DNA of 63,917 nt, the filler included, from Klebsormidium nitens (Eukaryota > Plantae > Klebsormidiophyceae): the NCBI GenBank assembly GCA_000708835.1. It is 6 parts of 6 records of this genome, joined end to end, with 100 filler letters (N's around TTAATTAATTAA, not from the genome) between each part and the next. Parts side by side here need not be neighbours in the genome. Positions count along the whole stretch, not along the records: positions 60,188 to 63,917 come from DF238551.1; 5 more parts are not named here. One strand, written 5' to 3'. Of the stretch, positions 6,871-63,917 are shown in pieces. The translations under genes and the position numbers were made by a program. Within the stretch, counting starts at the first letter, position 1, and the number at the start of each line of letters is the position of its first letter. The notes beneath the pieces were generated by a model that was not told the DNA's origin, made no database searches, and saw only the letters and a list, made by a program, of their open reading frames with translations.

Positions 6871-8437
6871 CCTTTTTGTCTGGCAGAATCATCCAGTGCC
6901 TTTCTTTTCAAAGACGTTCTCGCACCCGCTGTACGTCTGCAGCTGCAAACGCGTCCTCCTTTCAATCACCAAACTAGCTTCAACCTGCAACCTTGAAGTT
7001 GTACCCAGGCCTGCATTGACCAGCTCGACAGCCTGCTTTCCAACTTCTGGGTTAGCTTCACCCTCGTATTATCCTACATAGTAGCCGGGGGCATCTCGAC
7101 GGCCAACCCGGTCCCCTATAAGCCTGAACTAAGAGGTGGAAGAGATTGGCTCGCCATAACCTGACGCTTAAGAGGGTTTTTGAGGGGTGTGGAACATTGG
7201 CCTACTGGCCAATGTTCTCCACATATACGGCCTTCAATACTCGAATATATACGTATTACGTTTGCATGCAGATGCACAAGTATATCCTGCCGTAACCTAC
7301 AGATTGTCAGTCTTCATTTGAAAGATAATTGTAAGCTCCCACATATGCATTACAATTTTCATATCAGATTCCTATTTAATCGAGTTTGTGTGCTGGATGG
7401 TCCCGGTTGGATCCGCCAGTCGTGCTGTATTTTTCCAGTCGTCGATATAGGTGATCTAATATCCGACGGTACAAGTAGCTCTCGTTGCTACCCGTCAGTG
7501 AGCGCCAGTTAGATTTACCGTGTACCGAACCTGCGTCGTTCGATATGACTTAATCTAATCTCGATGACCAGAAAAGGTTGAGACTTTATAGTTCCGGACT
7601 TCGCCGATGAATCTCAGAGCGAAGAAGTGCCACTCGACCGCGGAGACAATCTCTTAATGACTGGCCGGTTATATAGTTCGATTCGGCCGGTGTAAGAAGG
7701 TTAAGTAGCAGAGAGGGTTTGTGACCATCGCTTCTTCATGATCATCTCTTTCCTGGCTCACAACAGCTCAAGAGTCACAAGCAACTTGGCTGAAGATGCT
7801 ATCTTAGAAACCTATTGGGCGCCACATGAGGGTGTCTTGTAGCCAAAGCGCTCTGACGAACAGGTGCAGGCAGCTTGGTTGGCTATACGAAGGGAAGGCT
7901 GGACCCAGCGAGGCCAAAACATGGCATTCAGAAAGTGATGCATCGAATGCTAGTGGTGGCACCTAAACTGGTCGCAAGATCGTCAGCATCTTAAAGGTGC
8001 GGCCCCTGCATCATAAGTTTGGGACTAAGCAAAGCATTTTCTTTTATCTAAGCATCCTTGGAACATCGTTTTGTTGTAATACCTCCTTAACTTCTTTTGC
8101 GAGAACACTTTCAAAGTCACCTTTAAAGGTATCTGTTGGCTGCAATGCTGGTCTTCCTGCACGCTTTGTGGCATTGAGCCGCTGCAGTTCGCACCTTCAG
8201 TCTGGGTTTTACCATACGCCACACTCTGAAAGAGTTCAGCATTTCAGGTCATTTCAGTCACAGGAAGGGGACTACACAGTTTTTGCCATTGCAACAGGCC
8301 TTTCGCCTCATTTCTGGCAGATGATATTACATTGCTGTCTTCATCATCACATTATAATGTTTGCTTTATATACCTCTGTGCAGAATCTATTCTGGTCGTG
8401 TCCACTTATCAATTTCTAATACGCCTGCAGGTTAGCT

Positions 8438-60187: not shown

Positions 60188-63100
60188 CCAGCGACATCAG
60201 GAGCGTCCCGGCCGCAGTTCCGCCCCTGCCAAATGCTGGAGGCGTGCGAGGGGGCCGCCCCTCCTACGCGGCCAAGCAGGGGGGCGCCGACTTCATGTTC
60301 GACTACGGGCTCGCCTTCAGCTTGCGGCCTGCCGGAGCATTTGCTCGGGGCGGATTTGGCTCGACGTGCATCGGCCGCACCTGTGGAGGAAAGGGGGCGG
60401 TCTACGCCCGGGGGAGCGAACCCTTCATCTGGGAGAGGAAACGAAACCGGGGTGGGGCACTCATCTGCCGAGGTGGAGGAGGGCATTTACTGTGCTTGCG
60501 GTGCGTGGAGGCCGAGTACAAAGCTGGGCGCCCCTTTGTTTCGAGCGCGACCGGGGGCCCTGTCCCCCAGCAGGAGCTGTTCACCAAGTACGAAGTGTTC
60601 CCCAAGACAAAAGAGCTTCGAGAGGTACAGTCAAGGGAGGTGGCAAGCGAGGGCGGCTACCAGTTCTTCGTCCAGAGGAGGGACCTTGCCGCATGCCCAT
60701 ACTGCCGCGAATCTAGAACGGCTGCTCCATTGAAGCGGGGGGTGAAGAGAACGCTCGAGGAGGGGGCGAGTCCACGGGAGCTCGGCATGGCGGCCCTCCT
60801 CTCGGAGCTTACACGAAGCAAGATTCCACCAATTGCGGTTGCTCCCGGCCTCTTTCTTGTGCCCCTGCTCGACGTCTCCAGCGGCCGCCTCCTGGAAGTC
60901 TCTGCAACCGAACGGGGCCTCATTAATGTCCCTCGACTCGTCAAGGTCGACCACACGGGCAACTTTCAATGCCTCTGTGGTCAAAAGGCGTGCCGTGACC
61001 ACGACACGAGGTTCCTGGAGGGGACCCGTTCTATAGGCGGCTGGTGGCAGGGCGGGGAGGCCATCTTCACAACCTTTGACGGAAGCCGTCCGTTCGTTCG
61101 AGAGGTCACAAGCGGCGTGCCTTGGGTGTTGCCCTGGGAACAAGGGGGGTGCGTGGGGGGCGCCCTCCGTGGGGTAGATGCAGAGGCGTGGAAGGGCGGG
61201 CCACAGCTTCGAGTGTTTGTCGTGAGCGATCCTGGAGAGGAGCCCGTGGTTTGCGTGCTCGGAGGAGAGACTGCGCAATGCAGCAATGTCAACTGCGCGG
61301 GGCCGGAGCGGTGCGGGCACCTTTTGAGTGTGCTCTCGAAGCAAGCCTTGCCTCTGATCGAACGTGCAATTGATGGAGGTAGGAGCGAGGCGACTCGGGT
61401 CCTCGCTGAGAGACGCACCGAGAGGGTCGCGTAGCGGGAAGCGGGGGAGAGGAGGCTCTTGGTGTGCAACGACCCCATTTGCCGTCGGCCGGACTCGAAA
61501 GTTGTCTGCACCCACCGAGGAACCCTCGAGCCCTGGGAGTGCTTGTCAGCGGCGGCGCTCGACATGGGGCACAGCCACAAGAAGGTCGACACGATCATGA
61601 GCCGTGGTGGAGCAAGTGTTACGAGCCTTTGCGACCGGTGGGGCGAGGAGGGCGTGCGGCGGCGGGACAAGGCAAAACATTTCTGCGCTCCAAGACCCAT
61701 CGAAGTGCTCTCGCCGTGCGGCCGCCTATGGCAGGTGGAGAGCAGGAAGGGGGCGTTGACGATGGCGGGGGCGCGCTATGAGGTGACCACCTATCGGAGA
61801 GTCTGTCGCATCGCTCCTGGGCGAGAGGCGGCTTGCTGCTCGGTAATGTACGACGGCCAGGTGGGTCTCAACATCCACTATTATTTGCACTCGCAATTCT
61901 CCTTCTTCTCCAATCGGGCCATCGCTCTTCTACTCCTAGCTTCACGGGCCTCTTTGAAACCTTGTGGCCCATTGTTCTCCTGAAGCGCTCTCAGAATTAC
62001 GTTCCACTTGAGATAGTATCGTGCTTTGTATGACGGTCTCGGATCCGGCACCCATGGCAGGCCGGAGAGATCACGTATCCGGTACTTGCGCCGAGCATCC
62101 ATGGTGGTCAAACAACCCAAAACATCATACCGCCTTCCAATACAATCCTCACAAATCGCTGCTTCAGAATAAGGAGAGCCTAATGGCCATCGAAAGCACA
62201 AATCGGTCTGATTACATAACGTGCATTCCTGAATTGGGTACACTTTGATGCAAGGATGTGGGCCTGGCAAAGGCATCTTTGTTGATTGTGGATAGTGGTG
62301 CACTTTTGAACCAACATAAGCGTGTGCATCCTTGCACGTACGTGCAGCATTTGAGAGGTCTTCAAGATCGAGCTTTCCATTTTCACCAATGATGCTTAGC
62401 ACCAACCCAAATTGTGCATTTGCGTTCATGCCGATAATCACCTTTTGCAATAGCCTTTGAATGAAGGAGATCAACTCAAACGCAACAGTGATTAACCTTC
62501 TCAACTGCTACTTGCTTACAGGAGGACGGCATCTTCAATTTTTCCGGGAGCAATCTCTTCTCCCACGGCCTTCTGCTCCGCAACCACTTTGCAGCGGCCC
62601 TGGGGGCAGCCCACAGCCTCAACTTCGAGGCCGGTGACATGGCGACGAGGAGCCTCGAGGGGCCGGACGCTCCTAGGCTTCACGACCGGGTGTTCGACTC
62701 GGCCATGCAAGCCTTCAACGACCTGGCCGCACGCTCGAGGATACAACACGTGTGCTCGCGCGCTGCTTGCGCACATCTCTACACGTTGGAGGTGGAGGCG
62801 GCCGAGGCGGAGGCTCGGGCGGCTGGCAACCCCCTGAGGCCGGAACGAACAGAGGGGCCAAGCTCCGAGTTGGCCACGTATGCCTTTGGGCGGGACAAGG
62901 TGATAACCTTCGACGGAACCTTCTTTGCCAACTCGAGCGCGATGCGTGATTCCGGCACCGAGGCGTCCCTGCACAGCATCTGCGAGCCGGACCCGGGGGC
63001 GCCAAGGGTTGCCGGGGGCTTTACTCCGTTGAGCGTGGGCGGGGTGCGGCCATCTGACATGCCGCTGGAGGGAATCGACTGCCCGTGGAAGTATCGGAAC

Positions 63101-63917
63101 GGCCTCTCGGAGCTTCGACCGGCCGTGCGGGCGCTAACACTTCGCTGGTGCAACTTTCGCAAGGCCCCGGCCCAAGGGAGCAACGCGCCTCTGACACCCG
63201 AGGAGTTCGTAGCCATGCGGGAAGGCCTTCCGGCCAACGTTGCTGCTCTAGTCGACCTCGTGACCGAGTCGGGGGCTTGCGCCGACCCGGCCACGTGTGC
63301 CGTTTGCCAGGGGGTCCCGAGGCGGCCCTGGATGCAGGGATTTTTGAAGGATGGGCCGGTAGGGCCGACCGGCTGGTGCCCGACCCACTTTCAGCCGTAC
63401 GGAGCCCTCCTGCACGCTCTTCTCATTCCCAGGTACTCTTGGGTATTTGGGCACGTGGTCACCTTGAAGCTGCTGAGACACGTCTTGCTGGAGGGGCCGT
63501 TCGACGAGCGTGGGCTGGCGTACCTCTCCGATGACGGCCCCATGCTGGCGGCCGTCCTTCGCCTCCATCCAATTGCCGGCGGACAATACGCCTTTCCAGC
63601 AACGCTGCGGCCGCTTGTCCGGGACATCTACGCCACGAACTTCCTCTGCTTTGAGCCGAGCGCGAACCGGCCGACGGGCCGCTCGTCGCAATCGCCTCTA
63701 GCCGCCCTCCATGATGCAACCGAGCATCTCTGGGTTATCGAAGGCGAGAAGTTAAGGCTTGCGGGTCAGCTAGAAGGGGCGGCTATGGAGTATGCCGAGC
63801 GACGGGGAGCGGCACTGAAGGGGGCTGCCAACTCGCTTCTGTTCGAGCTCGAAGTTCGAGAGCCCCAGTGCTACGAAGAGGGCGGCTTCCTTCGAGCCCC
63901 GTCGGCGACTTACACAG
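60188..63917 (+). mobile_element. KDZ (Kyakuja-Dileera-Zisupton)-type transposon gene, N-terminal cysteine-cluster region, pseudogenised. Exons <60188-61860 and 62522->63917; intron 61861-62521
   Basis: SWIM-like clusters CLCGQKACRDH and CSNVNCAGPERCGH. The splice gives CCSVMYDGQ|EDGIFNFSGSNLFSHGLL (CxC4-like), followed by CSRAAC...VITFDGT and FPATLRPLVRDIY...CYEEGGF. In-frame TAG at 61432-61434 and a frameshift near 63425. The catalytic domain is not in the window. Confidence 0.68.
61881..62429 (-). CDS. Intronless 182-aa ORF with an F-box-like N-terminus and an XPA/Rad14-like zinc finger plus DNA-binding domain, nested antisense in the KDZ-gene intron
   Basis: ATG at 62429 and TAA at 61881. 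Contains C-x2-C-x20-C-x2-C (CTLC...CEDC), LTTMDARRKYRIRD and ARYYLKWNVILRALQENNGPQGFKEAREARSRR. Confidence 0.72.
   Translation of the reverse strand: MNANAQFGLVLSIIGENGKLDLEDLSNAARTCKDAHAYVGSKVHHYPQSTKMPLPGPHPCIKVYPIQECTLCNQTDLCFRWPLGSPYSEAAICEDCIGRRYDVLGCLTTMDARRKYRIRDLSGLPWVPDPRPSYKARYYLKWNVILRALQENNGPQGFKEAREARSRRAMARLEKKENCECK

Follow-up and report, generated by a model that had tools for sequence, protein, structure and literature searches.

A predicted XPA/Rad14-type domain protein encoded antisense within the intron of a probably KDZ-like transposase gene of Klebsormidium nitens

XPA and Rad14 bind single-strand/duplex junctions and kinked DNA (structures 5A39, 6LAE, and 6RO4), and XPA-like domains are also known outside true XPA, namely in SLC30A9, in an F-box clade, and in giant-virus proteins. 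The viral examples include RAD14 of Clandestinovirus and the "XPA domain-containing protein" of Klosneuvirus, Catovirus, and Fadolivirus. The F-box clade, described by Kose et al. (2023; PMC10810185), unites distant XPA homologues that carry F-box domains. XPA itself is considered missing from green plants and green algae alike (PMC10810185). KDZ (Kyakuja-Dileera-Zisupton) transposons carry DNA-acting passengers, e.g., TET/JBP dioxygenases in fungi (PMC12730594). The present analysis concerns a piece of DNA from the charophyte alga Klebsormidium nitens, positions 60188-63917 of the window (the whole stretch of 63,917 nt, made of joined parts of the assembly). As a whole, it is best explained, with a probability of about 70%, as a decaying copy of a KDZ-like element that carries an accessory gene for element mobility, which would encode an XPA-type domain and is nested antisense in an intron of the transposase-like gene, hereafter the host gene.

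The window copy of the host gene contains a GT-AG intron with the donor CAG/GTGGGT at 61860/61861 and the acceptor TTACAG/GAG at 62521/62522 (a slash marks the splice site), and joining of the exons restores ...MYDGQ/EDGIFNF... in the host frame. On the opposite strand, an open reading frame (ORF) runs over 61881-62504, and its first ATG at 62429 gives a protein of 182 aa. Its stop is separated from the donor by 20 nt, and its ATG from the acceptor by 92 nt. The probability that 183 codons stay open by chance at the intron composition is ~1e-4 per frame. An earlier note on this DNA had described both the intron and the intact nested ORF, and both were read again directly from the sequence. The intron and the parts of the nested gene are as follows.

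61861..62521, plus strand: spliceosomal GT-AG intron, 661 nt, 47% GC (conserved sites, public gene models, and a joined paralog RNA contig)
61881..62429, minus strand: nested antisense gene, 182 codons plus stop, intronless, for a predicted XPA-domain protein (ORF listing, family conservation, dN/dS, and profile)
62295..62429, minus strand: conserved three-helix module, residues 1-45 (alignment A4; consensus M..N..FA.VLSIVGENG.L.L.DLA.AA.TCKDAQ)
62142..62225, minus strand: predicted C4 zinc finger, C69-x2-C72-x20-C93-x2-C96, aligning with the XPA and Rad14 finger
61884..62120, minus strand: predicted XPA_C-type alpha/beta subdomain and long basic C-terminal helix, residues 104-182 (LGCLTTMDARRKYRIRDL ... 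ARYYLKWNVILRAL ...; profile and model)

A single-sequence phmmer search of the ORF product against the Protein Data Bank (PDB) returned only RBM22 (E 0.39), so that a family profile was needed for the link to XPA. The first family profile (A1) matched Rad14 at E 1e-3. With the cleaned profile (A3), the top nine distinct PDB sequences were all Rad14 or human XPA (E 4.7e-4 to 0.019), and the next unrelated PDB match followed at E 0.1. The A3 alignment placed positions 67-182 against residues 105-226 of XPA, i.e., the full DNA-binding domain, and aligned the zinc finger, T..EA...Y helix, hairpin,.YL helix, and basic helix. An AlphaFold model of the ORF product, made without templates, had a pLDDT of 78 overall and of 86-92 over residues 61-150. 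When this model was searched by Foldseek against the PDB, as the earlier note had proposed, XPA or Rad14 filled ranks 1-14 (probability 0.90-0.99), and the VIA Z reached 5.2 for residues 64-182 of the model against residues 100-224 of XPA. In the fold search of Swiss-Prot, all nine XPA/RAD14 entries were the top nine. XPA_C proteins were prominent among AFDB clusters, XPA_C clusters came first in the ESM Atlas, and giant-virus RAD14/XPA-like proteins came first in BFVD (E 4e-4 to 6e-2). On the strength of the profile and the predicted fold, the domain is taken to be homologous to the DNA-binding domain of XPA/Rad14, and the XPA/Rad14-like reading of the earlier note is upheld.

Compared with the known domain (human XPA 98-239, structures 6J44, 6LAE, and 1XPA; yeast Rad14, structures 5A39 and 5G32), the ORF product has in common the C4 finger, the T-x-x-E/D-A-x-x-x-Y helix, the beta hairpin, the [MR]-x-[LY]-Y-L helix, and the long basic helix, in the same order. 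The predicted finger stands directly before the alpha/beta subdomain, as in XPA/Rad14. Across the family, C72 was invariant, C93 and C96 were nearly invariant, and C69 was found in most members. Unlike XPA, in which the finger spacing is x17, the ORF product has the x20 between the cysteine pairs that had already been noted, and the identity of 15-22% is below Pfam thresholds. It further differs in having its own N-terminal module, and its gene, which a mobile element carries in many copies, lies antisense in an intron. The alignment runs to approximately residue 226 of XPA, at which point the ORF stops, and no counterparts of the N-terminal ERCC1/RPA32-binding or the C-terminal TFIIH-binding segments of XPA are present in it; the latter segment contains the conserved Cys261/264 (PMC10810185). 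Since the protein ends with the DNA-binding domain and these partner-binding regions are absent, it is a relative of the XPA domain rather than an XPA orthologue, and not a replacement XPA. The gene is also unlike a single cellular repair gene in that it is multi-copy, always inside one mobile-element gene, and often broken.

An exhaustive HMMER search with the ORF product against 1.84 billion representative proteins gave 16 matches, comprising 15 family members, none of them a named protein, and one spurious Ig-domain protein. None of the NCBI proteins of K. nitens corresponds to the nested ORF. The ORF is conserved in related copies of the element, and the ORF or a remnant of it was found antisense in the same intron in L001, L002, L004, and L007-L013, which is every member placed. 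Amino acid identity to the window ORF was 46% in L008, 47% in L009, 40% in L011, 39% in L012, and ~30% in L013, the last being below tblastn detection. In the three closest copies, the dN/dS of the ORF was 0.22, 0.33, and 0.29 (Fisher p 2e-6 to 3e-5), with changes at third positions dominating; the value against L008 was ~0.2, near saturation. Besides that of the window, intact versions of the ORF were found in L008 (230 aa) and L011 (198 aa), and L002 showed an in-frame 5-codon deletion in the conserved helix. The length of the accessory protein ranged over 180-260 aa across copies. The low dN/dS (0.22-0.33, p ~1e-5) is the ground on which the nested ORF is read as having been a selected gene of the element. 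The comparison of copies that the earlier note had called for thus turned out in favor of its element-gene claim, with the ORF or a remnant at the same intron position in all 11 related copies.

Several observations were made on the intron and ORF of individual copies. L007 (3195-3380) bears a 475-bp deletion that leaves only the last 46 codons of the nested ORF and an intron of 186 nt. In L001 (~7900-8000, after window position 62464), an insertion of 99 nt into the intron duplicates the start of the nested ORF, and the inserted sequence resembles the L002 type more than it does the local copy. Between L001 and the window, pS was 0.43 in the host exon, ~3 times that in the nested ORF (0.17), and the nucleotide identity of the intron (0.92) exceeded that of the exons (0.83-0.90); copies may have exchanged sequence, or the GC-rich exons may have undergone CpG decay. 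L012 (1-4756) is a mosaic, with exons that equal those of L002 in closeness to the window (0.82 nt identity) and an intron and ORF of a different lineage (0.46 nt, 39% aa) that group with L011, which suggests that the intron cassette was exchanged between element lineages. L006 has a different middle section altogether. The ORF was also considered as a small transposon inserted in the intron; this was rejected, as no terminal inverted repeats were found and only one weak 14-nt direct repeat lies near the intron ends.

Splicing of the intron was assessed in related copies, public gene models, and RNA. The copies retaining the junction numbered 11 (named L001, L002, L004, and L007-L013; L003, L005, and L014 are duplicates of L002, L004, and L013, respectively), and the donor (CAG or CAA/GTRNGN) and the acceptor (YAG/GARGAY) were kept in all of them. 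Intron lengths in the copies were 186, 619, 644, 649, 652, 755, 807, 964, and 1357 nt (the length in L010 left out), compared with 661 nt in the window. The lengths were reported as non-multiples of three, so that the frame would be kept only by splicing. In the flanking codons, copies differ by synonymous-type changes, and this holds up to the edge of either splice site. Two public K. nitens gene models splice exactly at YDGQ/EDGIFNF (P0022 on L008 and P0026 on L007; model names KFL_009560030 and KFL_003870160), and the one on L007 still removes the 186-nt intron left by the deletion in that copy. In RNA run X7, a 230-nt paralog contig without the intron reads ...GACGGCCAG/GAGGATGGC... (also written ...GACGGCCAG/GAGGATGGCATC...); a DNA copy lacking the intron may be its source. 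Matches to Pfam CxC4 were obtained only in spliced proteins of the host family, and where mapped, they extend across the junction (residues 460-516 in P0022, with the junction at 497, and 506-578 in P0026, with the junction at 559). The segment 61861-62521 is a real spliceosomal intron, and the 61860/62522 splice put forward in the earlier note stands. A group I intron with a homing-endonuclease gene, considered on account of the antisense Cys/His-rich ORF, was rejected because the 5' exon ends in G and not U, GT..AG is present in all copies, and no Rfam match was found for 61861..62521.

In the piece, the plus-strand host frame is open over 60190-61860 except for one TAG, and it resumes behind the intron. 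The following parts were recognized.

60190..61431, plus strand: upstream part of the transposase-like host gene; open frame, Cys-rich, with SWIM/CxC-like motifs; start beyond the edge of the piece
61432..61434, plus strand: in-frame TAG that breaks the host gene in the window copy; the aligned L001, L002, and L004 have CAA or CAG
61435..61860, plus strand: host exon up to the donor; ends in ...CCSVMYDGQ and holds the first half of a CxC4-like Cys cluster
62522..63916, plus strand: host exon after the acceptor; begins with EDGIFNF; 465 codons; cut by the edge of the piece

The product of 60190..61431 showed 56-86% amino acid identity to copies L001-L010. The dN/dS of host exons was 0.05-0.14 in 13 of the 14 measurable copy pairs, and 0.07-0.13 for the exon 62522..63916. 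In the window, GC was 0.44-0.50 across the intron versus 0.60-0.69 in the flanking exons, consistent with the lower GC of the ORF region reported before. Along L002 (1-16531) and in the window, only the transposase-like exons were GC-rich (0.59-0.68), and all other parts of the element, the Prim-Pol/helicase gene and the nested ORF among them, were at ~0.47-0.50. The nested ORF lies on the strand of the helicase gene in L001, L002, L004, L007, L009, and L013. Composition and orientation together indicate that the nested ORF belongs with the virus-like gene block and not with the gene surrounding it.

The host-gene protein has relatives of 71-86% identity in K. nitens (e.g., KFL_009560030, KFL_006400060, and KFL_003870160), and further relatives on metagenome contigs of the Joint Genome Institute (JGI). 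Among K. nitens gene models, at least 15, located on different scaffolds, belong to the family, together with many metagenome contigs, and the copies share at least 12 kb, including small ORFs, a Prim-Pol/DUF5906 primase-helicase gene, and the host gene. From the many copies and the shared length, the piece is regarded as one copy of a large multi-copy mobile element. A gene for a protein of 1275-1738 aa with Herpes_ori_bp (UL9-type helicase) and DUF8368 adjoins the DUF5906 helicase gene (L007:13779-15958, L008:10673-14418, and L004:1-19), as seen in K. nitens scaffolds and one metagenome contig. The replication genes of the element are of a herpes- or giant-virus-like type. Upstream of the host gene, L002:10900-12500 and L006:5700-7100 share repeated units with many staggered BLAST matches, possibly subterminal repeats of the element. 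The likeness to the giant-virus XPA-like proteins lies in an XPA-type domain, matched at fold level, within a mobile genetic entity that has virus-like replication genes. The viral genes are found in free virus genomes, whereas the nested ORF is antisense in an intron of a chromosomal multi-copy element.

Several features point to a host gene that is probably of the KDZ kind. The language-model neighbors of P0018, the L001 ORF covering the 62522..63916 exon, were KDZ clusters (score 0.95; 198 of 256 features), and the host motifs FDGTFF, EDAACN, and VDRFH...H.C, as we see it, resemble the KDZ catalytic signature. When host residues 480-705 were used in a word-index search, all matches were Klebsormidium proteins. 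In UniRef, two K. nitens proteins of the host family bear the name "HMG domain-containing protein". HMGXB3-type HMG-domain proteins carry a CxC4 cluster, which could account for this name. As in KDZ transposons, a transposase-like gene, here with putative CxC-type Cys clusters, is present in many copies and accompanied by an accessory gene predicted to act on DNA. A known passenger is a TET/JBP dioxygenase, whereas here an XPA-type predicted binder is encoded on the opposite strand in the transposase intron. The element also differs from known KDZ transposons with passengers in its streptophyte algal host, its primase-helicase genes, and the sub-threshold evidence for its KDZ membership.

Residues 1-63 of the ORF product form a conserved module unrelated to XPA. 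In the model, residues 1-45 contained helices H3-16, H22-30, and H33-43 at low pLDDT (62-68). This module is possibly F-box-like, which is put forward as a lead. The language-model neighbors of the whole ORF product, as well as of residues 55-182 alone, were mostly F-box clusters with scores of 0.70-0.88, and Atlas scores below 0.9 are to be taken as leads only. Several AFDB clusters named "F-box domain-containing protein" (167-434 aa) aligned over both the N-terminus and the XPA-like part, from query residue 2-20 to 155-164, with a probability of 0.82-0.99 and a TM of ~0.3. The F-box/XPA-like proteins may resemble the ORF product in architecture, being small, with an N-terminal helical module followed by the XPA-like domain. 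The F-box clade of PMC10810185 is said to be without the conserved cysteines, whereas the nested-ORF family keeps all four, and none of the F-box/XPA-like proteins is described as transposon-borne, unlike the nested ORF.

With respect to expression, RNA contigs of 2.3-3.0 kb (word depth 22-94; three runs) matched the piece only at 60631-60705, 60792-60854, and 61170-61284, which are conserved blocks of the Cys-rich N-terminal region of the host. They show that a diverged relative of this N-terminal region is well expressed, and it may be a domesticated gene. As the nested ORF stops 20 nt from the donor and starts 92 nt from the acceptor, any mRNA for it must extend antisense into the host exons. 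Such an mRNA would overlap that of the transposase, and the overlap could couple or silence both.

A number of results weigh against the reading of the nested ORF as a selected, XPA-related accessory gene of a KDZ-like element, and several of them lend themselves to other explanations. In the Pfam check suggested by the earlier note, neither XPA_N (PF01286) nor XPA_C (PF05181) matched the window ORF or the 14 family members at E up to 10. In the fold searches, TM-scores were low (0.25-0.43) and the long helix superposed poorly, and the scores are ascribed to the different direction of this terminal helix. Both results, together with the occurrence of SLC30A9 and MerR-type domains lower in the fold lists, would fit a resemblance of general fold only, i.e., a zinc ribbon joined to a small MerR/excisionase-type winged-helix-like domain without common descent. 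This is improbable, as the profile matched Rad14 and human XPA independently, each at E below 1e-3, over the whole domain and with the same order of elements, well ahead of the next unrelated PDB entry (E 0.1), and every Swiss-Prot XPA/RAD14 entry outranked all other proteins. Given that XPA is reported to be absent from Viridiplantae including green algae (PMC10810185) and that the ORF contains the DNA-binding domain, its product might be viewed as the functional stand-in of the alga for the missing excision-repair factor. This hardly comes into consideration, because the alignment stops at ~XPA 226, the ERCC1/RPA32 and TFIIH segments are lacking, and the gene is multi-copy, tied to a mobile element, often broken, and found in none of the RNA assemblies. 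A further alternative is an F-box-type substrate adaptor that would contact Skp1 through its N-terminal module and, through its XPA-like domain, deliver the SCF ubiquitin ligase to DNA, with the element using it against host silencing or repair factors and not in transposition chemistry. The language-model neighbors, the F-box-named AFDB clusters aligned with both the N-terminus and the XPA-like part, the F-box clade among distant XPA homologues (PMC10810185), and our own reading of the N-terminal consensus as similar to the F-box pattern favor it. We nevertheless consider it unlikely, since Pfam F-box (PF00646/PF12937) matched neither the window ORF nor the 14 family members, the N-terminal profile A4, searched against the PDB up to E 10, matched no F-box protein and the search for an F-box by this route was dropped, Atlas scores stayed below 0.9, and model confidence for residues 1-45 was low.

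The remaining points concern the state of the gene, the intron, and the kind of element. The ORF was damaged in 6 of the 10 ORF-bearing copies, the window counted: L001 has a 2-nt deletion near the start and the 99-nt duplication, L004 and L010 are frameshifted, L009 is C-terminally truncated, L012 has an early stop, and L007 has lost 475 bp. The earlier note had argued from an ORF that stays intact while the host frame has a stop and a frameshift. The stop is there (TAG at 61432-61434, plus strand), no frameshift was found within 60188-63917, and with the damage in so many copies the argument is weak and does not hold in general. No RNA contig touching 61881-62429 was seen in four RNA runs at 80% likeness, where contigs drop rare transcripts, so that the antisense transcript sought after the earlier note was not detected, and none of the listed RNA runs contains the stretch. 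The dN/dS of the ORF speaks for past selection and not for present activity. Together with the in-frame deletion in a seventh copy and the premature stop in the window host gene, these results would be expected if the ORF were a relic without present function, open in a few copies by chance, and the element family were dead. Such an account has little probability in view of the dN/dS, the retention of the ORF in the same intron down to 30% identity, and the intact ORFs of the window, L008, and L011, with that of L002 intact save for five codons. That there is no intron at all, and that three separate genes of a virus-like genome stand side by side, would match the output of the prokaryotic gene caller: Prodigal split the region on the JGI metagenome contigs into separate ORFs, and the neighboring genes are virus-like (Prim-Pol, DUF5906, and Herpes_ori_bp). 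This can practically be set aside, being contradicted by the synonymous-type variation up to the conserved GT and AG, the same junction in published spliced models, the joined RNA contig, and a Pfam domain recognized only across the junction. As to the kind of element, PF18717 (CxC4), a cysteine cluster known in association with KDZ transposases, matched five of the eight spliced K. nitens models at E 0.002-0.044, all below the 26.9-bit cut-off. The KDZ domain PF18758 matched only the paralog P0041 (E 0.038; 14 bits against a cut-off of 26.6) and had no match in window pieces or metagenome ORFs, and the AlphaFold model of the host protein P0018, with 18 close homologues, had a pLDDT of 36. The KDZ transposon named in the earlier note is therefore retained as probable only, on sub-threshold Pfam matches and language-model neighbors.

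The reading that we prefer, an accessory gene nested antisense in a decaying copy of a KDZ-like element, can be worked out as follows. The piece would be one decaying copy of a large (at least 12 kb) multi-copy mobile element of a K. nitens-type charophyte alga. Its transposase-like gene, probably KDZ, is split by the spliceosomal intron inside the CxC4-like cysteine cluster, and the opposite strand of this intron encodes an accessory gene that itself has no introns. The accessory protein combines the 45-residue three-helix module with a predicted C4 finger, an alpha/beta subdomain, and a basic helix homologous to XPA/Rad14. The data establish the intron, the nesting in all copies, the purifying selection on the ORF, and the homology to the XPA domain, and the function is proposed on top of them. 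From the established properties of XPA/Rad14, it would be expected to bind unusual DNA structures, i.e., single-strand/duplex junctions and kinked or bubble DNA, as XPA does. Binding would take place at the element ends or at replication or transposition intermediates, with the structures arising at the ends or through the primase-helicase of the element. The N-terminal module would serve to attract a partner, which may be a protein of the element or, given a true F-box, Skp1/SCF. Recognition of unusual DNA combined with partner recruitment is a tentative mechanism by analogy with XPA, to which we give somewhat less than even odds, and its variant with an SCF adaptor is doubtful. In either form, the protein would be an accessory factor for the mobility of the element itself and not a host repair factor.

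What is new here is an XPA-type passenger of a transposon, the constancy of its antisense place in the transposase intron in every branch of the element family, and the presence of a predicted XPA-type domain in a streptophyte alga of a lineage reported without XPA (PMC10810185). A clear relative of the XPA DNA-binding domain in such an alga would be an accessory gene of an element and not a repair gene, with the antisense placement held throughout the diversification of the element family. It would add a new type of passenger for KDZ-like transposons beside TET/JBP dioxygenases, and it links the XPA-like domains of a transposon, giant viruses, and cells. Standard annotation misses nested antisense genes of this kind, and the protein is small and directly testable for zinc, DNA-junction, and Skp1 binding. 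A bolder picture, which we hold to be rather unlikely, is that a giant element encodes an XPA-type sensor of DNA structure fused to an F-box-like recruiter, that sense/antisense transcription couples the transposase to this accessory factor, and that the factor marks transposition or replication intermediates or lesions for ubiquitin-dependent handling. If true, a selfish element would have repurposed a repair-factor domain in a lineage that lost XPA, and such elements might have supplied hosts and giant viruses with XPA-like domains.

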